Assembly (NCBI RefSeq): GCF_020745735.1
Contig: NW_026867571.1
Span: 1,390,491-1,454,490 of the forward strand
Direction of reading: 5' to 3'
DNA length: 64,000 bases
From: Hemiscyllium ocellatum
Lineage: Eukaryota
A program made the translations under genes and the position numbers. The notes under the pieces were generated by a model that saw only the letters and a program-made list of their open reading frames with translations, searched no databases and was not told the DNA's origin. This document shows positions 22,374 to 53,420 of the stretch, in pieces. The stretch's first letter is position 1, and every line of letters begins with the position of its first letter.

Positions 22374-23284
22374 TTAATGAGTGAATTTAATTGATTTTTG
22401 AATTTGGGTGAAGGGATATTTCAGCACATTCTTCATTTGTTGCCTGAACTTAGTCTGGGTCACAGCATAAATCGCGGTGTTTGTGCAGCAGCTGAGGAGC
22501 TGCAACATGAAGCCGGATTCTCGAACAACGGGATGGATATATACAGGGGAATCACCAATAAACCGCAACCGGTACCATATAGAAAACGCCATTAACATTG
22601 ACCATAACAGGATGAAATTGGCTGAGATCACAAACAATAAAACAATGGATTTTTTTCGGTTTCTCATTTCTGTGTCAGACTGAGCGTCCCCATTGGTGTG
22701 AGCGCGGAGTCTCCTGCGGGCTCTGCTGCTCACTAAAATATGTCTGACGGTGAAAACATTGAGCAACAGAATCAGGAGAAAAGGAAGAGCTGGAGTTAAA
22801 ATGTTGTGGAGGAACTCGATTGTACCCCACACACTGGAGTATACAACATCATCTGTTGTATCACAAAACCAGGGAACGTTCCTCAGTTTATACCTAGCTG
22901 TGAGCATAAAATACCAGAAAATGTTCTTTAAAAAGCTCAGCACAGTCACAGCTCCCAGAACAACAGCCGCCGTTTTCTCACTGCAATATTTACTTTTCAG
23001 CTTCTGGCAACAAATGGCTACAAACCGATCAAAGGTGAAAGTGACGGTGAACCAGACAGAGCAGTCAGTGGCTGCATAAAGCAGGACGGCGTGGATATTA
23101 CACACGGGGACGGAGTCGATCAGGAAATACAGCTGGTCCCGATAAACAATGGGAATGTGTCTCAATATCAGGTCGAAAATAATGACCAGTAGATCAGCCA
23201 CTGCCATGGCCTCGAGGTAATGCCTGACACATGGAGACAAACCACAATCTTTACAAAGCAGGACGTGGACCGTCACTATGTTAA
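22374..23284 (-). CDS. Exon 2 (end of TM1 to TM7 and C-tail) of the GPR139/GPR142-like GPCR
   Basis: Acceptor tttgtttcttttccttcctcacAG (AG 23286-23285) with a CTGAT branch-like motif at ~23319-23315. Uninterrupted frame (V)NIVTVHVLL..YLEAMAVADLLV..PVCN..FTFDRFVAICC..PWFC..HNILTPALPF..FILLWS..CCTNTAIY..KFR to TAA at 22376-22374. Phase matches exon 1 (G+TT=Val). Spliced CDS is 1089 nt = 362 aa. Confidence 0.95.
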
Positions 23285-24059
23285 CTGTGAGGAAGGAAAA
23301 GAAACAAATTATACATCAGCCCGGAGGAAAATTTGCCAGTTTTATTGTGGAACCAGTGACATTTTTAAATGTGTCAATTTATTCAGAGATTTATTAAATT
23401 AATTGATGCCGAAATAACAAATGGAAAGGTCTGAATTATTAACAAAATGCGTCATAAAACAAAAGAATCCCTCCCTTTCCCAAATAGACATATCCATCAT
23501 AACTGATGGTTTTTCGAACGTTATCACACACTAGATCACTCGAGAGCAGACACACGTCACTTCTTTACAGGTCGTATTATAGAGGGTGAAAACGTTGCTG
23601 ATCTGAAGGATTCTCCACCAGTTCCTTGAAAAAGAACGGGGATAGGAAATTTCTGTCTTTTGCCTCAAATAGTGGTCAATCATCTGTAGTGAAGAAATGT
23701 AAATGCAAGGAAAACAATATGGTTCGCACAATATTTCGATTATTTGATGTAAAATCTTCTTTTACGATCAGACAGTGTCATCCCTTAGTCCGAGGCCTCC
23801 CAATCCCCATTTCTGTCTTATGTAATAGTCCCAGCTGTAAAATTTTCTGGATATTCAGTTCCCCAACTCGGTAATTCTGTCACCAGGTCTGACTAAAGCC
23901 ATTAAATCATATCTATTTCTTACGACGTACACACTGAATTCCTATGTGTTTTCAAAATACAATCCATATTCCTATAGAGTGCCTTTGATTCATCTTTTTA
24001 ACCCATTATTCCCTCGTCCATTTTCACTTTCATTCCTCATATTGACTCGGTCAAGAAGC

Positions 24060-24800
24060 GGCCTGACGTCGTCGTACACACAGAATCAGACCTGGTAGGT
24101 AATGTTTCCTATACCATCCCTGTGCATATCGTGTCCCATCGGCAGGACAGACTTACCCAGTGGTCGGGGTACCGTGATATGCAGTCAGGAATGGAGTTAC
24201 CCTGCAATTGCTCAACAAAGCTTCCAGAAACCGAGAAATCACATTTCAAAGATGCTCAAGAAAATCGCCCGATTTTCGACATCGACGTCCATGCATACCA
24301 CCCCTTGGTAATAACTCAGTTCCTCTCGATGTTGAAAACATATCAGAAGAAACACTGCGGATGAAAATGGAACAGGCGGACTTTGGGTATGGTGCTTCAA
24401 TGACCATGTCCAGAAGTGTTTCCACAGGCCCATCACAAACTGAGCAGGGCAAGGACACAAACACACAGCAGCCAGACTGTGGGAAGTGATGGGTGAGTCA
24501 GCAAGAGGATCTCATTCACAATGAACTACTTGTCACCAGTATATCGGTCCTCACAACATTGGCAGGAGCCCTCAGCACACAGTCTTGGTGCAGGGTAAGT
24601 CTCAGCCTTATATTGAAGGTACTGCCGACTATGTTATATTGCATTAGCTCTTGTGAATTTGGACAAATGGGAAATGCAAATGGAAACTGGGCATGCACGA
24701 GGCACTCTAGGTTGTCACCAGCTGCAGCATTAATGGTCTTCCATCCACCATAACGTCGGAAGTGGGCTATTCACTGATGGTTCCAAAATAATCAGCACCA
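24060..24800 (+). mobile_element. Decayed LINE APE-endonuclease region
   Basis: SHRQDR, VPLDVENISEETLRM and subsequent motifs typical of an elasmobranch LINE ORF2 N-terminus; multiple frameshifts. Confidence 0.55.
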
Positions 24801-25034
24801 TTCACTACTACACCCATACTGGAGCATTCTATTCAACCCATCAAGAGACTTAAACCGAAACAGAATTAGGCCATTCAGCCATTCCAGGCATTACTCAGCA
24901 ATTAGAGCAGATTCTTTAATCTCTCGTGCTTGTTACACAGGAAATGGAAGGGAACATTCAGCATTTGAAAGCTGTTACACAGGAATAGGGCGAGCAGTCC
25001 TTACTAAGCCCGAAGCAAGGTTAATATAGAGATA

Positions 25035-26115
25035 GAAAATGAAAATGTTGGCGATGGAGATACTTGCATCTAGACTAGAAGAGATTGAGGTTCCCAAGGA
25101 AAAGGTATTAGAAATACTGCAGAGTGCGAAAATAGACAAGTCTGCTGGGCCGGATGGGATCTATCCTAGGATTCTATGGGAAGCAAGGGAAGAGATTTCC
25201 GATGATTTGACACTGATCTTGAAATCATTATCATCTGCAGGAATAGTGCCTGAGGACTAGAGGATAGCAAATGTGGTTCCCCTGTTCAAAAAGGGTAGTA
25301 AAGACAACCCTGGTGATCACAGACCAGTGAGTCTCATTTCAGTTGTTGGTAAAGTGCTGGAAAAGGTTATAAGAGATAGGATTTGTAACCATCTAGAAAA
25401 GAATAATCTGACCAGGGACAGTCAGCACGGTTTTGTGAAGGGTAGGTTGTGCCTAACGAATCTCATTGACTTTTTTGACAAAGTGACCAAACAGGTAGAT
25501 GAGAGTAAACCGATTGATGTGGTGTGCATGGATTTCAGCAAGGCGTTCGATAAGGTTCCTTACAGTAGGCTACTATACAAAATGCGGAGGAATGGGATTG
25601 TGGAAGACACAGCAGTTTGGATCAGTAATTGGCTGGTTAAAAGAAAACAGAGAGTTGTAGTTGATGGAACATGTTCATCTTGGTGTCCAGTTACGAGCGG
25701 CTTACAGCAAGGGTCGATGTTGGGTCCACTGTTGTTCGTCATTTTTTATAAATGACCTGGATGAGGGCTTAGAAGGGTGGGTTCGTAAATTTGCGGACGA
25801 TACTAAGGTTGGTGGAGTTGTGGATAGCGACGAAGGATGTAGTAGGTTAGAGACATAGATAGGATGCAGAGCTGGGCTGAAAGGTGGCAAATGGAGTTTA
25901 ATGTGGACAAGTGTGAGTTGATTCACTTTGGATGGAGTAATCAGAATGCAAAGTACTGGGCTAATGGTAAGATTATTGGGAGTGCAGATGAGCAGAGAGA
26001 TCTCGGTGTCCATGTACACAGATCCCTGAAAGTTGCCACTTAGATTGACAGGGTTATTAAGAACGCATACAGTGTTTTGGCCTTTATTAATAGAGGGATT
26101 GAATTCCAGAACCAG
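25035..26115 (+). mobile_element. CR1 LINE ORF2 RT fragment
   Basis: KSAGPDGIYPRIL, VPLFKKG, RPVSL, SQHGF, DFSKAFDKV and [10 protein letters not shown], with stops and a frameshift. Confidence 0.95.
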
Positions 26116-26384
26116 CCCTAATCAGCCCTAGTTTCTTAACTATTTGCAATCTTTCTCAAAGATTTCGATAACTGGAGCAAACGTATTCAAAATAAATTCG
26201 TCAATGACGCTAAAATAGGTAGGAAATGAATTTGACAACAATAGGTGGAGAGACCGCAGTCAATAAGCAATGGACAGTAATTTTACAGATGTGATATAAC
26301 GTTGGTAACTGTGAACCTTTGAATATTGCAGGAGGTCTAAAAGGCTGCATGTGATATCAACGGAAAAGTTACGGGATTTAGTGA

Positions 26385-26735
26385 TACAGTGTGCACTGGA
26401 GGGTTCACTCTGGCACGTTCCGACATTGCAAGTTTTGCACCATGGTGGTCTGCTCCCTGATGCTCCCAGCGGCCATATAACACGCAGTGCACGAAGAATA
26501 TTTTGATGTGGCTGGTTGGCAGTGGGGAGCTATGAGGTCGAACGTGTTTTGAATCGTTTATCTAAGGGATGGCTTTCATCCAGGAGAACATTCTTGCTTT
26601 ATATGCGGATACCCGAAGACGATGGGAACGGCTGACTGTTTCTGGACAAAGAGGCTGTGGCAGCGAAGAGGACAGTGGGTATTCAGTAACATGATGCACT
26701 GTGCAAGGTTACGCTGCAACAGTAATGAGCAGACA
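26385..26735 (-). mobile_element. PIF/Harbinger transposase remnant (copy 2)
   Basis: CIMLLNTHCPLRCHSLFVQKQSAVPIVF; nucleotide similarity to ~46665-47010. Confidence 0.6.
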
Positions 26736-26984
26736 AAGGGTCCAATCGCAAGAATTAGAACATAAAATAAACGCATTGCCAGATCTACCGACATGGTTAG
26801 TTATATCGTGTTATCAATTCATCTCATACAACTAGCACAGATACCATAAATTGAGAGGAGACATCTAATCAGCGTAGAACATTACGTAGACCAAGCTCTG
26901 CTCTGTCCAACCAAGCAATATGCTCAGACTGTGCAGACAACACCAGGGCATAGTTCTCCCAACTCGATCTAGATATCAGTCCAG

Positions 26985-27111
26985 GAGAAAGTGAGGACAG
27001 CAGATGCTGGAGATCAGAGCTGAAAATGTGTTGCTGGAAAAGCGCGGCAGGTCAGGCAGCATCCAAGCAACAGGAGAATCGACGGTTCGGGCATAAACCC
27101 TTCATCAGGAA
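26985..27111 (-). mobile_element. 127-bp Penelope-derived hammerhead element with 14-bp TSD
   Basis: Flanked by AGATATCAGTCCAG at 26971-26984 and 27112-27125. Minus strand reads CTGATGA-agggtttatgccc-GAAC. Confidence 0.85.
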
Positions 27112-27669
27112 AGATATCAGTCCAGCACGGGGCATTATGCATACACAGCAATATGTTCATTTAGCTGGACGACATATCTGTCCAGCACCGGGAGCAGTGC
27201 AGACCACAACGGTACAATTGTATCTAGGCCGCTGTGAGTGAATAACTTTAGAGATGAATTTTATTGTATTTTCCCTACCTTTGAATGTATTTTGATCTAC
27301 TCTTCCAAATTATGTTGAAAATGCATTGTAAAGTCCTGAACCAGACACACAACCAGCTTACGGGGTAGCAACGGAAGCCCAACTTGGTCTGGGGACTCAG
27401 CTTGGTGTTCGCACAGATTCAGGTGTAAAGACTGTAAGTCGAGTATGTTCCTTTTTATTTATTTTCATTCTTGCACTGGACAATCAGTTAGTATTCTTCC
27501 AAATGAGTGCTAAATGTTTAAGTACCTGTAACGAGGAATGCAATCTTTACAGTGTGGAAATAGACGCTTCAGCTCAACAAGTTCACACCGACTTCCAAAA
27601 TTACCCTCCCAGTAATTCTATTAGTTTTAAAATATTTCTGGAAAACGAAAGACCTGGTCAACGTTTCTT

Positions 27670-30600
27670 TCCTTGTGCATCAGAGGCTGAGCAGTGACCT
27701 TTTAGAGGCTTACAAAATCAAGAGAGGCATGGATAGGATGAATAGCAAAGGTCTGTTCCCCAGTTTAGAGGTGTCCAAAACCAGTGAGTATAGCATTAAT
27801 GTGAGAGAGAAAGCATTTAACAGAGATCTAAGATGCAGCTTTCGATCAAAGAGTGTAGTGTGCATTTGTAACGAACTGTCAAATAAAGTGGAGGAGGCAA
27901 GTATGATTACAATTTTTGGCAGACAAATAGATGGCAAAATGAATAGGAAATGTTGAGAGGGGTAAGAGCCAAAGGAAGGTAAATTGGACGAGGTCAGTTT
28001 AGTAAAGCTGGTGAACATGGACAAAGGATCTGTTTGCATATTGCATGACTCTAAGAGTCCATAATTCTAAAAATGCGCATTCAACACCAATTATTCATTG
28101 CACTAAATTCATTTCCATGTCAAACATTCTCTGTGAATATTTTCAATGATCAAGCTCCCTGAACGTGCTTGAATGGAGATATCCTGATATTGATGTCGTC
28201 CTGTAGACAACAGCAGCAGCAGAAGCAGAGCTGGAATCACCATAATCTGTAACTTTTTGACTTGGATAATCCCTCAGTCTACGATTACTGCCAGACCGTT
28301 CGATGGTTCAGTGACGAGTGTCAGTGAGCATGCCAGGGTCAGAATCACGTGTCCCTAAAGCTAATGCCATATCATGAAAACTTCCATGCCTGATGGCTTT
28401 CATTCCAAATAGCAGAACTAACATCTGATAGAAAAGACAAAATGATCTCAAGATCAACAGGTGAGACCTAAACTCAGTAGATCTGCACCATCCAGAGAAT
28501 TGAACAGCTGGAGAAAATAGTTTCACAAACATCCCGGTCCTAAATAATGGACCAGTTCTGCACATTAGTGTAAAGGACAAAGATATAGCATCTGCACAAT
28601 CCTCAGCCAGAAGTGAGAAGTGGATGACCCATGTCATGTTGCTCACAGAAGCACAGATGTCAGTATACAACCAAGTTGATTCACTGCACGTGACATCAAG
28701 ATACCGCGCAACATATTAGGTTTTCCAGACTGGAGGGCCGTGACCAGTGTGTGCCGCAAGGATCGATTCTGTGTCCACGAGTTTTCGTCTTTTATAAAAG
28801 CGATTTGGTTATGAACATCGGAGGTATAGTTAGTAATTTGAAAACAGCACCAAGGTTGGAGACACAGTGGACAGGGAAGAAAGTTACCTCAGCTTACAAC
28901 GTGATCTTGATCAGCTGGGCCAACGGACTGAGGAATGGCAGATGGAGATTAATTTAACTAAGCAAGAGGTGCGGCATTTTGGTAAAACTTTCTTAGCAGG
29001 ACTTCTACATTTATTATCCGGTATCAAATCGGTAGTAGGGATATTCCATGTAACTACAGACCAGCAATCCTGTTGTTAATTTTGCGAAGATTGCTGAAGA
29101 AGGTACTGAGGGATAAAATCTATTTATGTTTGGAAAAGAATGACCTTATCAGTGATAGGCAACACGGTTTTGTGCAGAGCAGGTCGTGCCTTACCAACTT
29201 AATGGAGTTCTTTGAGGAAGAGACCAAGTTGATGGAAGGGCTGTAGATGACATATACACGGACCTTTGTCAGCATTTGATAAGGTTCCCCATGGTAAACT
29301 CATAGATAAAGTGAATTCACATGGTGTGCAGAATGTTATCGCTGAGTGAATAAAGAACTGGTTGAGCAACAGTACAGAGGGAATAGTAAGTTATGTGAAT
29401 TTTAATTCTGGAGAGGACTAAACTCTAAACACAACCGTTGATGAGCAGAAGATCTGAGATTTCAGGTCCGTTGTACCCTGAAGGTGGTTGCAAAGGTGGA
29501 TAGAGTGATCGAAAAACCATATGGTATGCTTGCTATAATTGGACTGTGTATTGGGTTTAAGAACTGGCAGTTGATGTATAAATTGTACAAGATTTTGTAT
29601 CAGCCGCTTTTGTAAATGCACTTCTGGTCGCCACATTACAGAAAGAATGTGGAAGCTTTGGAGAGTGTGCAGAGAAGGTTTACGAGGATGCTGCCTGGTA
29701 TGGAAGGTGTGAGCTATGAAGACTGGTTGAGTAGGTTGGAATTGTTTTCATCAGAAGAAAGGAGATTGAGGGGTGACATGATTGAGGTTTACAAAACATG
29801 AAGGGTTTAGAGATAGAGATAAGTTTAGCTTTACCCCAGGGCGAGGGATTCAATAACGATAGATCACATATTCAAGGCGAGAGATGAAAAGTTTAATGGG
29901 GGATACACACAAAACGTAATTTATGCCGATAGTGGCAGGTGCATGGAAATTGTTGACAGCAAAGGTAATAAAGGCAGACACGGTCAATTCATTTAAGATG
30001 TGTCTGGACAGCTGCATGAGTAGGTGGGGAGCAGAGGAATAGAGATGCTTAGGAATTGAGCTTGAGCGTTTAGGTGAATCGGCTGAGGCTTGCAGGGTCG
30101 ACGGACTGTTCTCGAGCAGTAAATATTCTTTGTTCTTTGTGTTTTTACATTATAAGATACTTGGGAGTGTTGTTGAACAAAGAGAGCTTGGAGTGCAGGT
30201 TCATAACTCAGTGAAAGTAGTCACGCAGCTAGATAGTTTAATGAAGAAGGTGTTTGGTATGCTTTCTATTTTTGGTCACGGCATTGAGTGTTGTAGTTGG
30301 GAGGTCGTGTTGTGGCTGTACAGGATTTTGGGTCGGACAAGTTTGGAATATTACATACAATTCTGGTATGCTTCCTATCGGAAGGATGTTGTGACCTTGA
30401 AAGTGTTCACAAAATATTTACAACGATATGGCCTGGGTTGGAGTATTTCAGCCACCGGGAGAGGCAGAAAAAGCTTGGATTATTTTCCCTGGAGGGTCGA
30501 AGGCTGAGAGGTGACCAAATAGAGGTTTATAAAAGCATCATGGACAGGGTAAAGAGACAAAGTATCTTTCATGAAATGGGATAGTGCAGAACAAGAAGAC

Positions 30601-31145
30601 ATAGGTTGAGTGTGGGGGAAAGATAGGAAAGGGACCTAAGGGGCAACTTTCTTGATGCAGAGGGTGGGTCGTGTGTGGAATATGCTGTCAAAGGAAGTGG
30701 CGGAGGCATGCAAAATTGCAAAATTTCAAAGGAGTCCAGATGAGTATACGACTAAGAAGGGGCAGCAGAGTGGCTCAGTCGTTAGCACCGCAGCCTCACA
30801 GCACCAGGGCCCCAGGTTTGATTTCAGCCTCACGCGATTGTCTGTGTCTGCATGGGTTTCCTCTCACAGTCCAAAGATATGCAGGTTAGGTGAATTGGCC
30901 ATGCCAATTTGTTCATAGTTTTATTTGCATTAGTCAGAGGAGTCTGGGTTACTCTTCGGATGGTTGGCTTCGACTGGTTGGGCCGAAGGACCTGCAGGGA
31001 ATGTAAAAAAGAAAGGGTTTCGAGAATTATCGATTAAGGGCTGTGAATTGGGAGTAAATTAGGTTGAGATATCTCGTCAGCATGGCTGGGTTGGACTGAA
31101 GTGTCTGTTTCCGTGCTGCAATCTCCATGCTTCTGTGACTCTGTA
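27670..31145 (+). mobile_element. Cluster of CR1 LINE 3' fragments
   Basis: Repeated LRGD.IEVYK, FWSPHYRKNVEALESVQRRFTRMLPG and LQRDLDQLG motifs with CR1 tails; interspersed with other repeats. Confidence 0.8.
30759..31005 (+). mobile_element. HE1-type SINE inserted in a CR1
   Basis: GTGGCTCAGTCGTTAGCACCGCAGCCTCACAGC head and GGTTAGGTGAATTGGCCATG core. Confidence 0.8.
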
Positions 31146-31489
31146 CGACAAGGATAATGCTCCATGACACCATTCCTGTAAAAGGATGAAGGCTTGTGAT
31201 GGACAATAATTCGTGTCCCTAGCGAAGCTGTTTCACTCTAACTCCAACTCTGACATCTCCCTGGCATGGGAAATAGAGTATCGAAAGTTTCAGCGCAGTA
31301 GAAACTCTTCAGCCCTCGATTTGGCGCCGACTTGTGAAATTAATCTGATGCCCATCTAACCTGCACCATTACCATCATTGTCCAAACCTGTGTCTAATGC
31401 ACATTTAAATGCCCTCAACTTCGGCGAGTTTACTGGTGCAGAAGACATGTCCCTACTTCTCTCTGAATGAAGAAACGACCGCTGATATC

Positions 31490-34400
31490 CTTGCGGCACA
31501 CCACTGATAACTGAGCTCCAGGATGAGCATTTCGCATCAACTTCGTTCAGCGAACCAATTTCTGATCCAAGCCGCTAAATCACCTTCAATCCAGAAACTC
31601 CAAAATATTTTTCAATAGCCTACCATGTGGAACCTTAACAAACGCCTTACTGAAGCCGACATACAAAACATCAACTGCCTTACCTTCATTCACCTGTTTT
31701 GTTACTTTCTCGAAGAATTCAGTAAGATTAGTGAGGCTAGATATACTCTTTACAAAACCGTGTTGACTAAGCCGAATCAAATTATTCCTTTCCAGATGAT
31801 TATAAATCTTATCTCATACAAGCTTTTCCCACATCTTACGCACAACCAAAGTAAGGCTCACTGGCCTATATTTACCAGGCATTATCTGACTCCCCTTCTT
31901 AAACAAAGGAACAAAATTTGCTCTCCTCCGGTATTCATGCACGATTCCTGTCGACAATGACAACATTACGATTAAAGCTAAAGTCTGCGCAATCTCCTCC
32001 TTGGCTTGCCAGCGAATCCGAGTAAACACCTCTCAGGAAAGGAAGTCGTTTTCCAGACACGGAGCCATCGTTTACTAAATAGGTTAAAGCTCCTGTCAAA
32101 AGGAAGACGAAGGGTAAATCCTATCCGGCTCTAGGGTCTTATCTATATTCAGATTTTCTAGAATTGTAATATCTCTTCTTTGTTAACCACAGTCCGATCT
32201 CATCTTGAAGCCTACATCTCCGTATTATCATCAACATTGAATTATTCCAGTGAGAATACTGAAGAAAATATTAATTAAGAGCTGCCCCTCTGTAATCAGA
32301 TATCACACAGAAACTTTCCACTACGACCACTTGATTGGCCCTATTCTTACTGTCGACATTCTTTTATTCCTGATATGCTATAGGAGGCGTTAGGGTTTTT
32401 CTTGATTCTATCCGCAGATAAATTCTTATTTTCTTTTCTGGCTCTTCTTATCTCTATCTTCAGATCTTTTCTGGCGAACATAGAACTTTCAAGCCCCCTA
32501 TTTGAGCCTTCATGCCTCATCCTCACATAAGCCTTCGTCTTCCTCTTGACAAGAGCTTCAACCTCTTTAGTAAACCATGGCTCCGTGTCTGTGAAACTAT
32601 TTCACTTCCTGAGAGGTGTATACTTATCGAGGAACAGCGGTAACTATTCCTTCCATAAGCTCCACTTATCAATTGTGTCCAACTCCTGCAATATCCTTCC
32701 CTTTCTTCCATATCCTTTTGCACAGTAAATACTGATGTAAAATACTCATTTAGTATCGCCCCCAATTTTCTGTGCCTCCAAGAAAAACCGCCTTGCTGAT
32801 CTTTGAGAGGCCCTATTCTCTCCATAGTTATCCATTTGTCCTTAATATATTTCTAAAAACAGTTGGATTCTCCTTAATTCTATTTGCCAAAGCTATCTCA
32901 TGTCCCCTTTTTGCCCCCCCGATTTCCCTCTTAATTGTACTCCTACTTCCTTTCTTCTCGTCTCAGGATTCATTCGATCTATCCTTTCGATATCTTACAT
33001 ATACATCCTTCTTTTTCATAACCGAACCCTCAATTTCTTTCACCATCCAGCATTCCCTATACCTACCAGTCTTTCCTTTCACCCTGACAGGAATATACTT
33101 TCTCTGGATTCTTGTTATCTCATCTCTGAAGGCTTCCCATTTTCCAAACGTCCCTTTGCCTGCGAACATCTGCCTCCAATTAGCTTTCAAAAGTTCTTGC
33201 CTGATACCGTCAAACTTTGCCTTTCTCCAATTTAGAACTTCAACCTTTATTTCTGGTCTATCCTTTTCCATCACTATTTTAAAACCATAGAATTATGGTC
33301 GCTGGCACCAAAGTGCTCCCCCACTGACACCTCAGTCAACTGCCCTGCCTTATTTCCCAAGAGTAGGTCAAGTCTTGCACCTTCCCTAGTAGGTACATCC
33401 ACATACTGAATCAGACAATTGTCTTGTACGCACATAACAAATCCCTCTCCATCCACACCCTTAACGCTATGGCAGTCCCAGTCTATGTTCGGTAAGTTAA
33501 AAATCCCCTACTATAACCACCCTATTATCCTTACAGATAATTGTGTACTCCTTAAAGGTTGCTTCTCAATTTCCCGCTCACTATTAGGGGGTCTATAATA
33601 CAATTCCAATAATGTGATCATCCCTTTCTTATTTCTCATTTCCACCCAACTAACTTCCCTGGATGTGTATCGGGGAATATCCTCCCTCAACATAGCTGTA
33701 ATACTATTGCATATCAAAAATGCTACTGCCCCTCCTGTCTTGCCTCCCTTTCCATCCTTCCTGTAGCATTTGTATCCTGGAACATTAAGCTTCCAGTCCT
33801 GCCCATCCCTGATCCATGTTTCTGTAATTACTATGATATCCCTGTCCCATGTTCCTAACTATGCCCTGAGTTCATCTGCTTTCCCTGTTAGGCCCCTTGC
33901 ATTGAAATAAATGCAGTTTATGTCCCTGCCTGCTGCCCTGACAGTTTGACTCACTTCTGTTCTCAGTTGTACCAGTCTCTGATTGATCTCTTTCCTCACT
34001 ATCTCCCTGGGTCGCACCTCCACCAACCTTAATAGTTTAAATCCTCCCGATCAGTCTGCTCACATTGAACAAAAACTGACCCATCTAAACTACTTGAACT
34101 ATAGTATTTCTGGTACGTATTGGCGATGTTAATGTCCTCCAAATGACCCATCTTGTTATTCTCACTCCTATCAAGAAGCATCTTTGCTATCCTCTCGTAT
34201 GTGTCCCTGGAACAATTCAGAGTACTCGAGAAAACTACCAACAGGGTGACCCCTAATTTCCTGTTTCTAACCTCAGCGCAATCTACCTCAGTGCATGAGT
34301 GCTCAAACCTTATCTCAGCTTTTATAATAATGGCTCGCCATACGCTTTTACCATCTTCTCTCTTCTTGTGAAACCTCTAAATCCGAAATCTGCAATAACC

Positions 34401-41952: not shown

Positions 41953-41957
<5 letters not shown>

Positions 41958-42018
<61 letters not shown>
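41958..42018. repeat. Compound (AT)n(AG)n microsatellite
   Basis: Seen directly. Confidence 0.97.
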
Positions 42019-42021
<3 letters not shown>

Positions 42022-42949
42022 AATCTGCTTCTCCTTGTTGTTTTTAAGGTCTCCCTTAGCATATTCTATGGAAATTAAGTGACGTGGGTTCTGGGGAGAT
42101 TAATGGCAGATCCTAGCGATGTGTTTGGCTAGGCCTATCTGGGCTTTGAGTTCATCTCGACACGTTATTCCTTCTTCTCAAACGTAACTGCGACATTCTC
42201 AAAACATTTCCCCTTATTCCGATGGAATAGCGAGGACAGTGATCTTGCAGCTACGTTGCATATTCCTCCAGACAGCTGAGACTGCGCTTAGCTGAATGGG
42301 AACCTTACAGCAGGCTGGCAAAGTGTTGCTGCTGTACTGGACTTCAGTGAGATCACATTTAATGAGATGCATAGATTTTGTCTGCTCACTGATGAAAGGA
42401 TATTGTTACATTGGAAGCAGATCAGAAATGGTTTCCTCAACTGATTCCTGCAATGAAGTTGTGAAGGTATAAGGAAAGAATGATCAGGTTGAGCCATAAC
42501 TTATTGGCGTTTACAAGAATGAAAGGTGATCTTATTATTATAAAAAAAACACTGGATAGAGTCAGCAACAGATACCAATTAAACAAAAAATGTAGGAATC
42601 CATTCCGCTTCTCCAGTCTGTTATACAGGAACAGCAGAGCTACGTTAATGTCACTTCCCCATTCACACCAGAACAGGACGAGCTATTCACCCGTTGGAGC
42701 CTGATATACAGTTACAGGAGGAGTTAGAGCAAAGACCTGAGCCTATAAATTGGACTCAGAATAGACCACATGGCATCACATCCTCTTACACAGCAAGAGG
42801 ATTAGTCCATTCAGCCTCCTTAAGTCTGTAACATGGGAACTGGAAGAGATTCGTACACTATAATAAGAGGAGGCTATTAGCAGGAGAATTAGAGAAGGAG
42901 ACGCAACTAGCTCACGCGAGTGGTCATCAACAAACAAGCTTTTTCGACT

Positions 42950-44465
42950 CTTCCTGTGGATGCACTGGTTACAAAGGCCCAGCAACATCTCTTCTTTCTC
43001 AGGCAGCTGAGAAAATTTGACATAATGGCGAGTACAGGAGTTGCGAGGAATGTTGAGTCTGTATAGGACATTGATTGGGACACTGTTGGAATATTGCGTG
43101 CAATGTTGGTCTCCTTCCCTTTGTAAAGATGTCGTGAAACCTGAAAGTGTTACGAAAGATTTAAAAGGATGTTGCCAGGTTTGGGAGATTTGAGCTGTAG
43201 AGAAAGGCTGAACAGGCTGGGGCTGCTTTCCCTGGAGCATCGGAGGCTGAGGAGTGACCTTATAAATGTTTACAAAATCATGGGGGGTGTGAATATGATA
43301 AACAGAAAAAAGTCTCTTTTTTTTAAAGATTAGATTACTTACAGTGTGGAAACAGGCCCTTCGGCCCAAGAAGTCCACACCGACCCGCCGAAGCGCAATC
43401 CACCCATACCCCTTCATTACCCCTTACCTAACACTTCAGACAATTTAGCATGGCCAAATCACCTGACCCGCACATCTTTGGACTGTGGGAGGAAATCGGA
43501 GGACCCGGAGGGAACCCACGCAGACACGGGGAGAACGTGCAAACTCCACACCGTCAGTCACCTGAGTCGAGATTTGAACCCAAGTCTCAGACGCTGTGAG
43601 ACAGCAGTGCTAACCACTGTGCCACCATGCCGTCCGCGTGCCACCGTGCAGCTCTTCTCTTGTTTGGGAAGGGCATAGGTACACGGTGAGAGGAGAAAGA
43701 TATATAAGAGACCTAAGAGGCAATCTTTTTCACACAGAGGGTGGTGCGTGTATGGAATGAGCTGTCAGAGGAAGTGGTGGAGGCTGGTACAATTGAAACA
43801 GTTAAAAGGCATTTGGGTGGTCATATGAATAGGAAGAGTTTGGAGGGATTTGAGCTGGGCCCTGGCAGGTGGGAATAGATTAGTTTGGGACATCCATTCG
43901 GCATAGACAGGTTGAACTGAAGGGTCTGTTTCCATGCTGTGCATCTCTATGACTCAATGACTCTCATACCCTTGCCAACTTTTATATGTTTCCGAGAGCA
44001 TTCTGTCTGAATGTATCACTATCTGGTATAGCAACTGTATCCTTCTCGATCGGAAACGGTTACATAGAGTGGCGAACTTGGCCCGGACAATCACAAAGGA
44101 CAGCCTCACATCTATATGATGCATCTACCAGGCCCGCTGTCAAAGAAAGGCCGCCAGCTTTCTCAAAGATCCATCCCACCCATGCAATGGTTTTCAAGGA
44201 ACTCTGCCATGGGGGAGAAAGCACAGAAGAACACGCGCAACAGCTGGTATTAAAAGAGTTACTACCATACTGTTGTTAGAATACTGAATGAGCTCACAAA
44301 CTCATAGCATTCGCCTGATTATGTGGTTTTGTTTCTGCCACTGATCGCCTATTATTTACTAGTCTATGCTATTTAACGCTGTGATCTGTCTGTGTTGCTC
44401 TCAAGACAAAACTTTTCACTGTGCACATTTACACGTGACTATTCATTCCATTCAATTCAATTCAT
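42950..44465 (+). mobile_element. Rex1/Babar-type LINE 3' part, split by a CR1 (~43030-43960) that contains a SINE (~43328-43650)
   Basis: KAQQHLFFLRQLRKFD (~42974-43021) resumes at ~43960 as TLANFY..ESILSECITIWYSNC; (ATTCA)n tail at ~44441-44465. Confidence 0.78.
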
Positions 44466-45019
44466 ATCGAGTCAATTCAATACTTTTTAAAATGAAAAGT
44501 AGGCGGTAATTCAGCCATATGTCTGTTGTCTCGGAGCAGGAGAAGGCCAGGCACTCACTCAGTCCTATTTCAGGGACGCATCGCGCTATTGTTCAGTGTC
44601 TCAAGCGTGAAATGGTGGAATATGAGTTGACCCTTAAGCCCCTCAAAAGGTTTCACAGCAACAGGAAGATTCCATAAACCTTCATGCCTCTGACACATCA
44701 TACTGAGAAGGAGATGCGGGTATTGAGTCTCTAACTCAGGATATTCTGGCCATCGAGAATTTAAGGTAGGAACATCATACGTACATACAGTCCATCGAGT
44801 TTGTAAACTAAGAACAGGATGAGTCCATTCCGTCACTCATGCGTCTTGCACAGCAGTTGGAGTATTTTACCTCTTACACAGGAACACAGGAAAGGGAAGG
44901 TAGAGGTTATAGAATAGGTAGGACTGAGAATGATCATCATCAAGGGTGAATGAAAAGTAGTGATTAAACAGTTGTGATTAAAGGCAAATTGTTAGAATCA
45001 AATATTAACGAATTACTAA

Positions 45020-46275
45020 CATGAGATTTGCAGTCAGCATGGTTTTATGAAAATAAACCTTATTTTACTGCATTCTTTAAATATGTGACAATCAAAGTAG
45101 ATAATGGGGAACTCAGAGATGTAATGTCCCGGACTTACAGAAGGCATTGATTAAAGAGCTGCACAAAAGATTAGGCTCAAAGATGAGCGCACATGGTTTA
45201 TGAAGGAGTTATTCGCGTGGATAGAGGGTTGGTAAGCCCACAAAATGACGAAATGCAAGAGATGGAACAGTTGTTTCGTTTTATGGTTGGCAGTGTTTGG
45301 ACTGCCATAGAGTTCAGACCGCTGGCTCTGTCCATTACTCATCTACTGCATGAGTTGGATGACGGAACAAAAAGAAAACAAGACAAATTTTCAGACGATA
45401 TTAAAATAGGTGGAAAAGTAGGTTGATGCGCCGAACATATCACAATAAAAATGACAAATGGACATGAATCGTTGTGGTGAATGGGCCAAAGTTTGGCAGA
45501 TAAAACTTAACGTGGATATGTACATGTTTGTCCATTTTGCTCCAAAGAATAGAAAACAACTTGATATAGAAATCGACAGCAACTTCAGAGTCATTACGTG
45601 AGGAACAATCTGTGTGACCTCATGCATATCACAGAAACCTCACATGCAGGTGAAACAGGTAATGAAAAAGAGAAGTGCAATGTCTGTGTTTATTTGGAAA
45701 GGGATTGATATAAAAGAGTGGGAATAATTGCTGCAGTTCTGCAAGTAATTAGTGAAATCGAAACTGGAGTATTGTGTACAGTTTTGGTGTCCTGATTGGA
45801 GGAGGAATGTAGTTGCAATGCAGTAGTTCAGAAAGTATTCTTGAGATGGATACAAGGGATGAGGAGCTTGCTTTATGAAGAGAGATTGAACAGTTAAGGA
45901 CTTTACTGTCTGTAGTTTTTCAGAATGAGAGGTGGTGTGATTGGGGTATGAAAGATGCTAATGATGATTGACAAAGTAGGTACAAAGTGAATAGTTCCTC
46001 ACGTGAGACAATCTAAAACAAGAAATCATAGTGTGAGAATAAGGCAGGGCAGATTTACAACAGAGATAAGGCGAAATTCCTTCTGTCGAAATGTTGTGAA
46101 TCGATGTAATTCACTGTCCCAGAGAGCAGTGGATTCTAGCACATAGAGTAAATGAAGGGTTATGGAGAACGGTCAGGCAAGTGTGACTGAGGTCCAGATG
46201 ACATCAATCATGTTTGTATGATTTGGCGGAGCTTGCTCGAGGGTCTAACTTTCTAACTGATGCTCCTCGTTCTTC
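45020..46275 (+). mobile_element. Old CR1/L2-group LINE RT to 3' end
   Basis: SQHGF, KFSDDIKIGG and LEYCVQFWCP motifs, plus a 3'UTR. Confidence 0.75.
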
Positions 46276-46619
46276 TTCAGAACTTGGAATGTGTTTCACA
46301 GGAATGGCGGAGGTCTGGTTATCAAACAGGAAGCAGATATTCGGAAACATCACTCTCGATCACGCTGATAGTATCCGAAATGTAGAATCACACAGTGACC
46401 AGTACTGGGTCATCAACAAAATAAAATCTATGTCAATGATTTAGAGAAATGGAACTCAGTTTGGCGATCAAATGAAGGTAAGCAGGAAATTAACATAGCA
46501 AGAGAATGTGGAGAGATGGCAAATGGATATAAACAGGAAAAGTCAATGTATATTAGCTTGGCCGGTGGAATACAACATGTTATCTAACCTGTGATTTTTT
46601 GTTAACGAGGAAATGGAAG

Positions 46620-47480
46620 GCAGCATGTTACTGAAATGGCAAGACGTTACTGGAGATCGTAACACAGTGTGTACTGGAGAGGTCACTTTGAACCGGTCAG
46701 ACAATGGAAGTGTTGCTCCATCCCTCTGCTGATCAACTCCCTGATATTCCCAGTGGCTCATTGCTCTCAGTACTCAGGGAAAATTGTGATGGTTGATGGT
46801 TTCTGGTTGGGAATGGAGAGGGGGAGGTTGGTTTGAACCGAGTATTAATGGCATGGCCTTTGTCTGAGATGCCATCCTTTCGTTCTACGTAGAGACTCAA
46901 AGATGAGTGTAATGTTCAGCACTTCTGAATGAAGAGGCTGTGGCTGCTGCCAGGACAGTGGCCACTTACCAACATGATGTACTGCACATGGTCACACTGT
47001 AACACGAATGCAATGAGAGATTTTTCAGTTTCTCTACCTCTCTCCATTGAAATGCTGACCTCGCGGAGCCATGAACACCACAGTGAATCCCGCTCTGCTG
47101 GGAATACAAGGAGACACCAGGCAGCTACCTGCTGAGGGAGAAAGCATTGTATTCACTTTCTCCACCATATATTTCCTCCATCACAGAATGGTGAAACCAA
47201 AGTCGACCTCCTGGCTGATGACAGATAAGTCAACCACGCCTGCCTTGTAAGTTCCCGCCATTGAAGCTGAATGAAATTGTGATCCTGACAGCCATAGGCA
47301 GCACCGTCCTCCCCTGGTGTGATGCTGCAGGTCCCGATAAAGGAAGTGACACTGCTCCGAGTAAAGCTCCTATTTCAGTCAGGGTCTCCTGATATCTGCT
47401 CCTGGGCTCTGTGCTGCTTGGAAAGCTGTTTTCGGAAAACACGGGTGGACATGGCAGATCTCTTGCCCCACGCATACTCA
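46620..47480 (-). mobile_element. PIF/Harbinger (HARBI1-like) transposase remnant
   Basis: In order on the minus strand: RTVLPMAVRITISFSF, LQCDHVQYIMLVSGHCPGSSHSLFIQ, GWHL.DKG, EQHFHCL..S..LQY. These match Harbinger DDE transposase motifs (CDH..I..V...PGS.HD, GWLLGD.GY, RFRCL.SGG.LQY). Confidence 0.75.
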
Positions 47481-47634
47481 TTCTATTGTTTCAGAGCGTC
47501 CAATTTCTGCAACCTCTCCTCTATTTTGTTGTTCATGTTAAACACCCAGATGCGGGAACTACAATCCCCTTGATCCACCAAATCCTGAGTTCTCTCTGAA
47601 TATCTGAGGCAGCTCACAGCACAACGTCCGGCAA

Positions 47635-50600
47635 ACCATCCCCAGCACCTCCAGTAACATTTCAGTAACAGGAGTTAGACAGACACCCTTTTGCTTCAAG
47701 TATTATGGATCAGTCCAGCGCCCCTCAAAATATTCTACGAAGGCATATTGAACCCTAATCTTCCCGTATTTTAAATGAGATATGAAGTGTGTGTTTCAAA
47801 TATGTTGTGACTGGTCAAATCACTCACCGTTAAGCAAACTATAATATTTTTAAACGCTCTAGCTAAAGCACAGTGAAACGAAAGAACAAATTTGAAGAGG
47901 TTCCCTCTTGGAACACGCAAATAATAGACATAATACCTTCAACTAACTCACAGTTCTATTACATCCCATAAAGAAATTCCTTGGCATAAAGGAAAATTTA
48001 AACACATATTCGTGCATGCTGTTCTCCAGTCCAGGAGGAAGCAAAATCAAGATAGATTTCAGAGAGAATAGCAGCTAGAGATAACATATTATAACGTCCA
48101 AACGCACCAAGCTACTTGGGGACCCCAAGTAGGTTCTGAATGTTGCAACTAAAAACAAAACTGGTCTGTGAGAGCTGGCCACTGCTCTACCTTGGTTCTG
48201 ACCATAATTTTTTTTAAAAAAGTAAAGGTCGCCCAAGTGATTTACTGCAGCCATTTTCAGATGGAAGTCCAGCAGCTCCGCCATTAAGTCATTTCTTCAA
48301 GAAGAATAAAACAGGAGAAAATAACCGTTTTAAATATGTATGTTGTATAGTCTACTAGTAAAGAAAGAATAAGGCTTTAGCCATACGCTCCTGGCTCAGA
48401 CCTCATTTTACATCCTTCATCCAAGTCTTAACAACATGTGGGCAATTATGTTTTTTTCGTGCAAACAGCTACATAATTTTCAAATTGAATGGCTGCAATA
48501 ATAAACCCTATATCAACAGGCTGATTTTTTCTCCTTAAATTTCTTCAAAACTTCAAGGGATTATGACCAGTATGCAAATTTCTCATAAAAATGTTATTGG
48601 CAACTTAAATGCTGAAATATTGCAACGCCAACACCAAGGTCAAGGTCTTCTTTTCAGTTTTGGACTAATTTTGTTGACGATTTCACCGGACACTCCAAAC
48701 ACACTTCACGTAGTGGCACAGTTCTCATCTGTCCATTAATCCTTCGGAATGGCATATCTCATCATGTCTCAGTATCAAATAATTGAATCCTTCTGTACCT
48801 CTGTATACTGTAACAGTTGACTTGTTATCCTGCCCGAAGCCAGTAAACCTTACTGTTGCAAATAGATCTTTAACAAAGATCTGCCTCGTTCTTCTCCATC
48901 CATCACAGAAACGAAACTTTGATTTATGGACGAACTCATAATCATCAGTCATTTTGGCTGCTAATCTTGCCATTTTAACTCTCTCCTCTTCAAGGTGTGT
49001 TCTCACCATCTCCGGAAGTGAATTATTGAACTTCCCCATTATAACAGTCTCTCTAACAACGTCATTGGTTTGTTCTATTGTTAATGCTCTTCTCCACCTA
49101 TCATATTGCTTTGTTTGATCCTTTCAAACTCAATGTACATTTAACCTGGGTCCCTTCTTTGATTCCTGAAAAAAGCTATCTGTAGGCGTCTGGCTAAAAC
49201 TCATATGGTATTCTGAAGGCTTGATAAACGTGAGGTGCTACGTTTTGAAAGAAAATGTCAAAGCAGGTTTAACACTTAATGGGAAGGACCGAGGGATTGT
49301 TGCTGATCAAGGAGACTTTGGATCGCAGGTTCATTGAAAGTAGAGTAGGAGGTAGATAGGATAATGAATAAAGCGTTTGACATGCATTCCTTTGTTGTTG
49401 AGTTGAGGAGTTTGGAGGTCATGTTGCGGCTGCCCGGGAATTGATTAGACAACTGTTGGAATATTGCGTGCAATTCCGGTGTCCCTCCTGTCACAAGGAT
49501 GTCATGACATTTGAAAGTGTTCAGATTGATGTTGTCAGAGTTGGAAGATTGGAGCTACAGGTAGAGGCTAAATGGGCTGGGGCGGTTTTCCCTGGAACCT
49601 CGGAGGCTGGCTAGGTGCTGGCAAATGGGAATAGGTTAGGGTAGGATCATTGGTTGCATAGCCAAGATGGACAGAAGGGTCTGTTTCTGTGCTGTCCATC
49701 TTTCTGAGGAGATGTCTCTATGACCTCCTCATACCTGCGCTGATAGTGATACAAAAAAAAACTCGCTCGGTGTAACTCTCAGCTTTGTTTGGGTCAACGG
49801 AATCCACATGGTCACTGGTCGCTGCATTTGTTTAGACACTTTCTCAACTGAATTTCAAAACGCTTCTACGAATTTCACGTCACATTTATACAATGTCTGC
49901 ATATATTTATAAACAAAACCACAAAAGCTATTTCATGACCAGTGTTGCACAACCTCATTATCCTCCTCATTCAGCCTACCTTCTACCTTCATCTCTACCC
50001 TTCTACGTCGAATTTCCTCTCTAATCACTAAAGTTTGAAGTTGAAATATTTCTTTTCGGCTTTTCTTCACTCGGTTTCTGACTTTGTTCTTCCTCTTCTA
50101 TTCTGTTAACTCTACTTTTATTCATAAGTCAAACTGTTTCAATTGCTTTTCATATTCAAGCTGCCTCGTCTGCAATTAAATTTTAGCCAGTTTGAAAGGT
50201 TCAGATGACGTTTCCAACAAAATGTAAATGCTCACCTTTTGCGCTCGTTACCTATCCTTTTCTCAATGAAAACAGCAACCCCAAATCCAGCGTATCTCCC
50301 AATTCAAGCAGCTTTGCCTTGCTCAAAGTTTGTCAAATAGCCAATGTCACTTCTCCAACTACCAGAAAACTTATAGTGACTGAAACGGCCGTTACTACAC
50401 AAAGCAGGCTTTAAAGGAACGGATTCAGCAACCAGAAAAAAAGGACACAAACACCTACCACACCCTGTATTTTAGACAAACAATCTCTCCATGCACATTC
50501 TCCCAGTATCTGCATAGGTTTCTTCCGGGTGCTCCGATTTCCTCCCACAACACAAAGAATTGTAGATTAGGTGAATTGACCATTCTAAATTGCTCATATT

Positions 50601-51636
50601 GTTCAAGGATATGTAGGTGCATTAGTCAGGGGAAATTCAAAATAATGGGGAATTGGAATGGGTGGGAAACATTTAGTATGGTTGTTGTGGATTTGTTGGG
50701 TCAAATAGCCTGTTTCAACAACACCGTAATGTTACGGATCCTGAACCCAGCTGGAAATTATCGGTGTGGAAATGGCCAAGAAAACCCATTTCGCTATGGT
50801 CCAGACCAGACCGTCTCAAATTATTTATTTTAGGAAGGGAACCTTGACGCCAACATTTTCTTGTTTTTAAGGTAGATATGAGATGGGTGTTCCAAATATG
50901 ATGCAACTGTCAAAACACACAACTTTAAGCAAAAGGCAATTTAATTGCACACTTGAAAAAAAATAAAAACTAAAAGAAGCGGAATTTAGAATATCTTAAG
51001 TTTGTGAAATATAACCGAATATTCGATACAGTAACTTCTAGGAATGAACTGTTCCAGTTTTCCAACATCCCACAAACACACCCCTTAGCAAAAAGGCACA
51101 TGCAGCCATACATTCCTGCATGCAGTTTTCCAATGCAGGATGAAACAACACCAAGAGATTTTTGACAGTGAATAGCAGCTGTAGATCATTTATTGACGCT
51201 TCCAACAGTTCTAGGAGTCAAACATTCGTGACTGTCAAAGCTATACAAAACTGGACAGCCTGGTCTGTGAGAGCCTGGTCTGTGAGAGCCTGATCTGTGA
51301 CAGCCTGGTCTGTGACAGCCTGGTCTGTGAGAGCCTGGTCTGTGACAGCCTGGTCTGTGATAGCCTGGTCTGTGACAGCCTGGTCTGTGACAGCCTGGTC
51401 TGTGACAGCCTGGTCTGTGAGAGCCTGGTCTGTGAGAGCCTGGTCTGTGACAGCCTGGTCTGTGAGAGCCTGGTCTGTGACAGCTGTCCGTTGTTACGAT
51501 TATTGTAAAAATAAACCTATACGTCTCCTAAATTATTTACTTAAGCCGTTTTCAGTAGGCAGTTCGGTATTTACGACCTCTCTTAAAACAAAAATGAGGA
51601 GAAAATAAATTTTATAAAAATGGGAGCATTGTCACA
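47635..51636 (-). mobile_element. Internally deleted Gypsy (Gmr1-type) LTR retrotransposon remnant
   Basis: LTR-like direct repeats at ~47635-48350 and 50730-51636; the latter reads TGTGAC...GTAACA on the minus strand. gag remnants QTLSKAKLLELGDTLDLGL and FNNSLPEMVRTHLEEERVKMARLAAKMTDDYEFVHK; protease-region similarity to ~60000-60130. Carries CR1 (~49310-49720) and SINE (~50485-50725) insertions. Confidence 0.75.
51256..51484. repeat. 15-bp minisatellite, 15 copies
   Basis: (C/G/T)AGCCTGGTCTGTGA x15, near perfect. Confidence 0.97.
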
Positions 51637-52386
51637 CAGGTTAGATATCTTATCCATTACAGTAAAACTCAAGAAGCCTCCTCGTGTTAGTGACAGGACA
51701 ACAACCTGAGAGGGACAAACACAGGAGTTCAGTGAGCATGGACTGACCAAATTTCAAAGATGGAATTCAAGATGCTGAGCCCGCGTCCAACAAGAAGCAT
51801 CACATGGGACACAGTGGGGAGTGAACAACATCTCAACACACACCATTTCATTGTTTCTGAGGTTCACAATCCCAGCACCCGGCACACTACAGAGCCAAAA
51901 AAACAGGCTAAGGAAAGACACAGAGGGACAGAAATAATACATTAAAGACAGAATCAGGTAATTGATAAACTGAGAAAATGTTGTGGAAATATGGTGAGAA
52001 AGACAGGGCAGTGGGACTAACTGAAGGACTGAGAATTCCAAGAGTAACATTCTAAGAATTAGACCATTGAATAACTACATTGCGAGACAAGAAAAAAAAA
52101 GATTTTACATCAAATTCGGCTTCCAAGAACGCTTCAGACAACATGACCTGGGATAAGATGACAGGAGAGTATGCAGGGCTGTGCAGACCATGATGGCATA
52201 TCACTAATAAACTGGACTATTTCCGGCATGGGGAACATTGCAAAACTTTACTAACACAACGGGACAATAGTCTCATCAAGTTACCATCTAGCACGGTAGG
52301 ATTTGTAGCTCTTGCTGTGAGTGACAGTAAATGGGTTTCTCCCAAATTAATGTTTCATATCTCCTTTAGGATCAGTACAAGGAAAG

Positions 52387-52388
<2 letters not shown>

Positions 52389-52468
<80 letters not shown>
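52389..52468. repeat. Compound (GT)n(GA)n microsatellite
   Basis: Seen directly. Confidence 0.97.
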
Positions 52469-52472
<4 letters not shown>

Positions 52473-53242
52473 GTGTGTACACTCGGGCTGTTTGAATGTG
52501 AAAATCATTACTTGAGAGAATACACGTCCGTTAGAACTTTGGGTAATCGACAGAGAGACACCAAGGGATGTTACACGGATAGAAGAGATAAAGTGATTGA
52601 GAATATTAAACTAAAGGCACTGCCAAGCTCAATAGAAATATAGAGAAGTGTATACAGGAATGACAAATGAATTTAATTTTGGTGTAAACTCGAATCAGAT
52701 TTGCTTCTGGAACTTAGTAACCGGGAGTGTCAGCAACAGATTATTGGCAACATGAAGATCGCTGTTTTTTTATTGCTCAAGGTTGAAGGAGTAGATAGGA
52801 TGTATCAATGAGATATAGTCTGGAGGGCTGAGTAATTAAAATTAGTCATGGTCGGGGCATAGTGTCAGGGATCCGGTCATGGTCAATGGGATCGACACAG
52901 TTGTGACTCGTCTGCTTCAGTCTCAGATTTAGATCAGGAATTGGATGCAATCAGAGGAAGAAAATGGTATTTGTAAACAGAACAGACGACAGTGACCTCA
53001 TTGCTCCAAATGTTAAAACAGCAAAGTCGGTGAGACACTGAATCGTGGTCCGTTGCTGAAGCTGAATAGCTCAACATCGTGATCCATGAGCAATACTAAC
53101 AGAAGCAAGGAGGGAGACCGTATTTGATCAGGTTCTCTAATGCTTTCAGTAGTGATATGTACAGTGACTATCTGGATTCAGTGTCTCAACAACAACAGTA
53201 ATAGTGACAATAAGGAAATAATATTTGGACAGTGAGACTTAC

Positions 53243-53420
53243 CAGGGACACCAACCATAGCCAGGAGAGGATAGTAAAAATATTGAATAAGGAGAAGAGC
53301 ATAATAGATTCGCGATGGTAATCCCAACCAATATTTTTTAGAAAGAACCCAAACATACATGGATAAACTCCTGTCCATTGTTGAAACATTCCAGTTTAAT
53401 GTTCTCAGATTCTGATACAT
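53243..53420 (-). CDS. Exon 1 (N-terminus + TM1) of a GPR139/GPR142-like class A orphan GPCR
   Basis: Translates MYQNLRTLNWNVSTMDRSL...IQYFYYPLLAMVGVP+G, then a canonical donor G|GTAAGT (GT at 53242-53241). Has an N-glycosylation sequon NVS. YYPLLAMVGVP matches GPR139 TM1 YYSLLLCLGLP. 178 nt = 59 codons + 1 nt (phase 1). An alternative in-frame ATG is at 53378. Confidence 0.85.

Follow-up and report, generated by a model that had tools for sequence, protein, structure and literature searches.

A two-exon receptor gene with a 30-kb intron in Hemiscyllium ocellatum and the GPR139-like receptor family of cartilaginous fishes to which it belongs

Organization of the gene

The DNA analyzed here, referred to as the window, is a stretch of 64,000 nucleotides (nt) from Hemiscyllium ocellatum (assembly GCF_020745735.1, contig NW_026867571.1, positions 1,390,491 to 1,454,490). 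Its minus strand carries two coding exons of a class A G-protein-coupled receptor (GPCR). An earlier note on this DNA had claimed that two exons 30 kb apart splice in phase into an uninterrupted protein of 362 amino acids (aa) with seven transmembrane helices (TM1 to TM7), and both the coordinates and the junctions proved to be as claimed. The parts of the gene are listed below in window positions; helix residues with a decimal point or an x carry generic receptor numbers, and a slash marks a splice site.

53421..53648, minus strand: proximal upstream block, common to all seven compared paralogues; in some copies the homology reaches about -1270 (window position 54693)
53243..53420, minus strand: coding exon 1, the N-terminus and most of TM1, ending in ...YYPLLAMVGVP plus the first base of a Val codon
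23285..53242, minus strand: single phase-1 intron, 29,958 nt, GTAAGT...CACAG
22374..23284, minus strand: coding exon 2, from N1.50 of TM1 through TM2-TM7 and helix 8
21877..22373, minus strand: 3' flank, likely the 3' untranslated region, homologous between paralogues for 267-497 nt past the stop

Exon 1 (178 nt) ends at the donor CCCTG/GTAAGT, and exon 2 (911 nt including the stop codon, TAA at 22376-22374) follows a pyrimidine tract that leads into the acceptor CTCACAG/TTAAC. Joined in phase, the two give 1089 nt, that is 362 codons and a stop, with no internal stop codon. With the window's own exons as tblastn queries, the 64 kb contained a single exon 1 and a single exon 2, which share a strand and follow each other in the correct order, and the first 110 residues of 20 family members gave the same single result. 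The N-termini of more than 12 family members match exon 1 and no other site in the window, and whale-shark and zebra-shark paralogues have a homologous exon 1. Taken by itself, exon 2 offers no usable start and would be without TM1; its match to shark proteins reaches E 1e-163, which excludes chance. Since the three runs of N in the window all lie outside the gene and interrupt neither the exons nor the intron, 29,958 nt is the length of the intron as it stands in the assembled sequence. Judged from the DNA, the two-exon gene is confirmed as real and intact, and we infer that its exons are spliced in vivo.

The ATG at 53420 is the first in-frame ATG downstream of a TGA at 53522-53520. Translation may also begin at 53378, where another in-frame ATG lies in a better Kozak context and at the position annotated as the start of a zebra-shark paralogue; this leaves 14 N-terminal residues in doubt, and the product could be 348 aa long instead of 362 aa. 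The start of the gene is spanned by a 42-bp tandem duplication (53376-53459, minus strand) whose units, 53459-53418 and 53417-53376, are 79% identical (33/42 by hand count) and each end in ATG. The second unit encodes residues 2-15, so that the duplication supplies two possible starts, 53420 and 53378, and 14 extra residues with the sole N-terminal NVS glycosylation site. The same duplication was seen in whale-shark paralogues.

Gene structure in paralogues and in a relative outside the family

Gene structures were compared at seven paralogous loci, five from whale shark and two from zebra shark, at each of which the annotated protein was rebuilt exactly from two exons. All seven have a phase-1 intron at the same codon behind the donor CCTG/GTAAGT; the acceptor is CTCACAG/TTAAC in six and CTTCACAG/TTAAC in the remaining one. 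Their introns measure 10.5-23.7 kb, and the gene model of a manta-ray paralogue (P0139) spans 43 kb. A sturgeon gene (P0283) that represents the conserved GPR139-like gene discussed below has a phase-1 intron of 912 nt at the same codon (GIP/S-N there, GVP/V-N here). Thus the intron is ancestral, and its great length is a trait of the family to which the window gene belongs; the position shared with GPR139 that the earlier note had pointed out holds, in codon and in phase, for this GPR139-like relative. The two-exon structure, the phase-1 intron, the conserved splice sites and a multi-kb intron are traits of the family, and the window gene has all of them.

The encoded receptor and its relation to GPR139

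The protein matches the Pfam 7tm_1 profile at E 1.4e-17 over profile positions 2-260, with 64.5 bits at a cut-off of 30.5. It has N61 (N1.50), D90 (D2.50), the arginine of a DRF motif, W287 (W6.48) and the asparagine and tyrosine of NTAIY (N7.49 and Y7.53), all of which are at least 90% conserved in the family. The motifs that had been read by eye in the sequence are likewise present: LWSML in TM6, NTAIY in TM7, the cysteines of PVCN and PWFC, and the aligned TM5 histidine.

Among solved structures the best match is human GPR139, which exon 2 hits at E 8e-6 and a full-length paralogue at 1e-10. A profile of the family matched GPR139 at E 1.7e-30, while the next receptor, neurotensin receptor 1, followed ten orders worse at E 2.8e-20. 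Structure-based identity to mammalian GPR139 is 20-22%. The likenesses to GPR139 (structures 7vug and 9m42) are the N-x-x-x-Y of TM7, which lacks the proline in both, the aligned TM5 histidine and the shared absence of the usual TM4 tryptophan. The differences are as follows: Pro6.50 and Arg6x51 are lost here (LWSML in place of LWAPR), E3x32 has become Tyr and N7x38 Phe, and TM3 and the second extracellular loop (ECL2) have a cysteine pair that is missing at the aligned positions of GPR139. Further, GPR139 has one copy whereas hundreds exist here, and the intron here is 10-30 kb long.

The residues that anchor agonists in GPR139 are E3x32, R6x51 and N7x38 (PMC12775434). In the window protein these three align to Tyr, Leu and Phe, so the aromatic amino-acid pharmacology of GPR139 should not be transferred to it, and the suggested link to aromatic amino-acid sensing falls with the loss of the three polar anchors. 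The proposal that the gene is intact and divergent from GPR139 is borne out. On these comparisons the window protein is a distant relative of GPR139 and not its orthologue.

Family size, taxonomic range and phylogeny

A search of a large protein collection returned 2086 clusters at E <1e-5, so the gene is not a single-copy one. The best 120 of the 2086 clusters were all from sharks and were mostly named "probable G-protein coupled receptor 139", in agreement with the statement in the earlier note that shark annotations hold many such models; the closest among the matches listed was a bamboo-shark protein with 84% identity. In an exhaustive search of 50%-identity representatives, 109 clusters fell below 1e-30 and 164 below 1e-10. 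All 30 family representatives whose names were looked up came from cartilaginous fishes, comprising sharks of five orders, rays and skates (Mobula, Hypanus, Narcine, Leucoraja and Rhinoraja) and the chimaera Callorhinchus. A lineage expansion in sharks had been proposed; what stands is a very large lineage-specific family, and what has to be given up is its confinement to sharks, as rays, skates and a chimaera have it also.

Names assigned automatically in the databases include "neuropeptides capa receptor-like" and "vasopressin V2 receptor-like" besides "probable GPR139". Database models are inconsistent (P0139, P0207, P0175, P0285 and P0017), and one manta-ray model repeats TM1-TM3. An atlas search gave nothing beyond the automatic name, and no description of the family was found in the literature.

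A maximum-likelihood tree was built from 72 proteins. True GPR139 and GPR142 were left out of it, and neither was among the matches listed in the database searches for tree sequences; two proteins tried as GPR139 candidates, P0267 and P0268, are not GPR139. The cartilaginous-fish family forms one side of a branch with support 99/88 (55 rows), while a conserved gnathostome gene, including its own shark orthologues, forms a clade with support 100/99. The window protein falls in an orectolobiform (carpet shark) subclade (100/100), nearest to whale-shark P0012 and Chiloscyllium P0002, and is sister to the latter in a quick tree. Sharks and rays occur together in several subfamilies, and the chimaera falls in one, so diversification of the family began early.

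The next-nearest proteins are 31-33% identical and form two groups, the conserved gene and a small salamander group. The conserved gene, likewise named "probable GPR139" (the group of Latimeria XP_005988539), occurs in coelacanth, sturgeon, teleosts, amphibians and reptiles as well as in sharks, and it is apparently single-copy. No relative outside the family is nearer, and the two have in common the TM1 motif YP-x-LA-x-x-G-x-P and, in sturgeon, the phase-1 intron at the same codon; the conserved gene differs in being a single copy with a 0.9-kb sturgeon intron and in forming a separate clade. Sharks carry an orthologue of this gene (P0282, P0289) alongside the expanded family. No mammal or bird was found among the 120 matches listed for the conserved gene (P0243, P0282-P0399), which may have been lost there. 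In some models it adjoins TMEM183A or is fused to it. The gene may be one of the extra GPR139/142 subtypes mentioned in PMC6504862.

The window gene might still be read as orthologous to GPR139 or GPR142 and hence as the shark version of a brain or endocrine receptor that responds to aromatic amino acids, since GPR139 is the best solved-structure match, annotation pipelines name the family after it, Pro7.50 is missing in both, and a GPR139-like relative shares the intron position. That reading is barely credible given an identity of 20-22% with E values of 8e-6 to 1e-10, hundreds of paralogues, and Tyr, Leu and Phe at the places of the three agonist anchors; in addition the family is set apart as a clade, and sharks have retained a single-copy GPR139-like gene besides it. 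The separate clade, the low identity and the many related clusters together speak against orthology. From the alignments and the tree it is well supported that, within the GPR139-like lineage, the family stands as a clade of its own that is confined to cartilaginous fishes.

Selection and the distribution of variation

Across 54 family members, 51 columns are each at least 90% conserved. Exon 2 of the window keeps 51 of 51, among them N1.50, D2.50, the DRF arginine, W6.48, N7.49, Y7.53 and the TM3-ECL2 cysteines. The ratio of nonsynonymous to synonymous substitution rates (dN/dS) was estimated by Nei-Gojobori counts from eight coding sequences, with helix boundaries taken from an AlphaFold model of P0012, which is 80% identical to the window protein. 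Between the window copy and the others dS is 0.30-0.37 and dN/dS 0.37-0.46. The window copy is under purifying selection, weak for a GPCR, and on its coding sequence it is probably functional.

These results bear directly on whether the two exons form one gene. An intron longer than those of the seven measured paralogues could mean that the exons are leftovers of different copies, or that the locus is an unexpressed pseudogene that so far has no stop. We regard this as quite unlikely: both exons are intact, the 64 kb holds no others of the kind, and the two follow each other correctly on one strand; their splice sites fit the consensus and agree with those of the paralogues, not one of the 51 conserved columns is lost, dN/dS is as just given, and the ray paralogue model, at 43 kb, is also long.

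By region the estimates were as follows, with the interval in parentheses (the 95% interval in every line below the first).

Helices: dN/dS 0.24 (0.17-0.33)
Helix middles and cytoplasmic halves: dN/dS 0.24 (95% interval 0.15-0.37)
TM3: dN/dS 0.18 (0.05-0.40)
TM7: dN/dS 0.09 (0.01-0.28)
Extracellular thirds of TM3 and TM4: dN/dS 0.18 and 0.06 (upper bounds 0.59 and 0.34)
N-terminus: dN/dS 0.88 (0.47-1.56)
ECL1: dN/dS 1.12 (0.52-3.47)
ECL2: dN/dS 1.41 (0.87-2.56)
ECL3: dN/dS 0.64 (0.26-1.75)
ECL1-3 together: dN/dS 1.12 (0.75-1.73)

TM3, TM4 and TM7 are nearly invariant, their extracellular thirds included (dN/dS 0.06-0.39), and an entropy map of 63 full-length proteins showed the same pattern as the regional values. 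On a fixed core, then, the extracellular surface changes at the neutral rate or faster, with a dN/dS that does not significantly exceed 1. Diversified ligand pockets, as envisaged in the earlier note, were not what we found, for among close paralogues (at least 66% identity) TM3, TM4 and TM7 hardly vary and the variation lies in the N-terminus and in ECL1-3. This pattern is the opposite of that of odorant receptors.

Predicted structure and a possible mode of action

The AlphaFold model of the whale-shark paralogue P0012 (pLDDT, a per-residue confidence score, 86.4; pTM, an overall fold score, 0.84) has seven helices and helix 8, a beta-hairpin in ECL2 and an ordered N-terminal helix. Its structural neighbors are mostly receptors for peptides and proteins (chemerin, opioid, neurotensin, somatostatin and CXCR3). 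Assignment of the family by structure search with Foldseek was rejected, as class A receptors all score alike. Compared with the peptide and protein receptors of class A (neurotensin, opioid, chemerin and chemokine), the family resembles them in the predicted ECL2 beta-hairpin and the TM3-ECL2 disulfide, and they are its top structural neighbors; it differs from them in an identity of only 15-19%, and the structural scores fail to separate them from other class A receptors.

We propose that the family branched from the GPR139-like lineage and kept the phase-1 intron just before N1.50, which would then have grown to 10-30 kb, and that within cartilaginous fishes, to which it appears restricted, it expanded to hundreds of copies per genome. 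Transcription would begin at a promoter just upstream of 53420, and splicing of the two exons would yield a receptor of 362 or 348 aa. A ligand would bind the extracellular face made up of the N-terminal helix, ECL1, the ECL2 hairpin, ECL3 and the helix tips, apparently the sole part that differs between paralogues, and the signal would pass through the almost invariant helix core (D2.50, the DRF arginine, W6.48, N7.49 and Y7.53) to a G protein. Because only the extracellular face differs between paralogues, the family would offer many receptors with different extracellular surfaces and one signaling core. We reason that such a pattern would fit peptides, proteins or other surface-binding ligands better than small odorants in a variable pocket.

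Diversification confined to the extracellular surface would also be expected of immune or other non-neuronal sensors of peptides or proteins in leukocytes or barrier tissues, comparable to the chemokine, formyl-peptide and MRGPR expansions, and the modeled ECL2 beta-hairpin, the ordered N-terminal segment and the peptide and protein receptors among the structural neighbors are in keeping with such a role. Foldseek scores barely separate any class A receptors, however, and no V segment or immune gene was seen in the window; we consider immune sensing improbable.

Our preferred explanation is that the window holds an intact, probably functional class A GPCR gene of a cartilaginous-fish family that split from the GPR139-like lineage, and we put its probability at about 80%. 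What it states of structure and evolution is well supported, while binding at the surface is reasoned from where the paralogues differ. Several points weigh against it. No intron measured is longer than the 29,958-nt one here, so the two exons are paired on the ground that the window offers no other candidates. A protein from a short ENA contig (P0120) was considered as a complementary DNA and rejected, its N-terminus being the translated pyrimidine tract of the acceptor, that is, genomic read-through. Pro6.50 and Pro7.50 are absent throughout the family, which is unusual in signaling-competent class A receptors, though GPR139 too is without Pro7.50. The loop dN/dS is not significantly above 1, and the loops may be unconstrained rather than ligand-diversified; the selection test covers only eight close paralogues by a counting method. 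Finally, true GPR139 and GPR142 lie outside the tree, so that its root and the exact sister group are provisional.

Intron and flanking DNA

The paralogous loci align in two islands only. The first, with about 70% identity, consists of the promoter and exon 1; the second, with about 80%, starts in the last 260-430 nt of the intron and continues through exon 2 into 270-500 nt of 3' flank. In some copies the first 30-700 nt of the intron can also be aligned between paralogues, and the remainder of each intron is unrelated, transposon-rich DNA. A search for other genes in the window intron, by Pfam on long open reading frames (ORFs), gave just one fragment of a long interspersed element (LINE), and the intron also holds a tandem array.

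25273-25755, plus strand: LINE reverse-transcriptase fragment, in the intron, antisense to the gene
51254-51484: tandem array of a 15-bp unit, 15.4 copies, in the intron

A zebra-shark paralogue intron (L002 23246-30097) contains a gene model of 355 aa with an RVT_1 domain. Downstream of the window gene an AATAAA lies at 22175-22170, 199 nt after the stop. Immediately 3' of the gene, at about 14000-22000, is an 8-kb tract of strong strand asymmetry, with GC content 0.49-0.53 and GC skew down to -0.65, the plus strand being C-rich and G-poor. It consists of degenerate CA/CT-rich low-complexity DNA with few tandem arrays and gives a run of long spurious plus-strand ORFs at 18070-21237.

Upstream of the gene, the most conserved part of the shared promoter among eight paralogues from three species is 53611-53650 (minus strand). 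Most copies have in this core a GTTAAC, a forkhead-like TGTTTGTT and ATTAAT-type sites, a similarity that may merely reflect recent duplication. Promoter similarity as proof of constraint was rejected, because copies separated by a dS of 0.1-0.37 could still be aligned even in neutral DNA.

A chemosensory role

Cartilaginous fishes have a keen sense of smell and very few canonical odorant receptors; in sharks the odorant receptor and the trace amine-associated receptor (TAAR) repertoires are both small. This background counts in favor of the family being an olfactory or other chemosensory repertoire, sparsely expressed in neurons of the nose or of taste organs, that supplies the odorant receptors sharks seem to lack. 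So do the size of the family, its lineage specificity and frequent duplication, and a dN/dS that is raised by GPCR standards and peaks on the extracellular face. At 53593-53577 (minus strand), some 170 nt upstream of the ATG, a homeodomain-type TAATTA abuts an O/E-like site, TCCCAGAGGAG, an arrangement that recalls the Lhx2/Ebf composite of mouse odorant receptor enhancers.

The promoter evidence has another side. The pair of TAATTA and TCCCAGAGGAG is fully intact in about three of eight paralogue promoters, and its spacing is off by 2 nt from the single mouse composite example compared (Sfaktiria). In the mouse odorant receptor enhancer paper that describes Sfaktiria, a 2-bp insertion impaired the competition of the composite motif for binding. 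Similarity between these promoters is, moreover, expected from recent duplication alone. A catshark sensory-organ study, in which no GPCR was among the 50 most specific genes of the brain-and-olfactory library, also argues against a chemosensory role.

The comparison with known chemoreceptors is divided as well. Odorant receptor and TAAR families are, like this one, large class A repertoires particular to their lineages, which duplicate often and have a raised dN/dS. Unlike it, they have intronless coding regions and concentrate their variation in pocket residues of TM3, TM5 and TM6, whereas in this family a very long intron interrupts the coding region and a variable N-terminus and loops surround a nearly invariant helix core. 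On this evidence a chemosensory role is a doubtful possibility. The stronger claim, that this family and not the odorant receptors, TAARs or V1Rs is a main undiscovered olfactory or taste repertoire of cartilaginous fishes, we think unlikely.

Significance for the receptor repertoire of cartilaginous fishes

The family to which the window gene belongs can now be defined by its clade, by 51 signature residues, by the two-exon structure and by its splice sites. Its presence in databases has been under misleading automatic names only, and gene finders need to bridge introns of 10-30 kb in order to model its genes. A lineage-specific family with hundreds of members and a diversifying extracellular face is a candidate for an unrecognized sensory or immune repertoire. 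If the chemosensory role were true, a hypervariable extracellular surface on a fixed core would read the ligands, and this would account for how well sharks smell although their canonical odorant receptors are very few.

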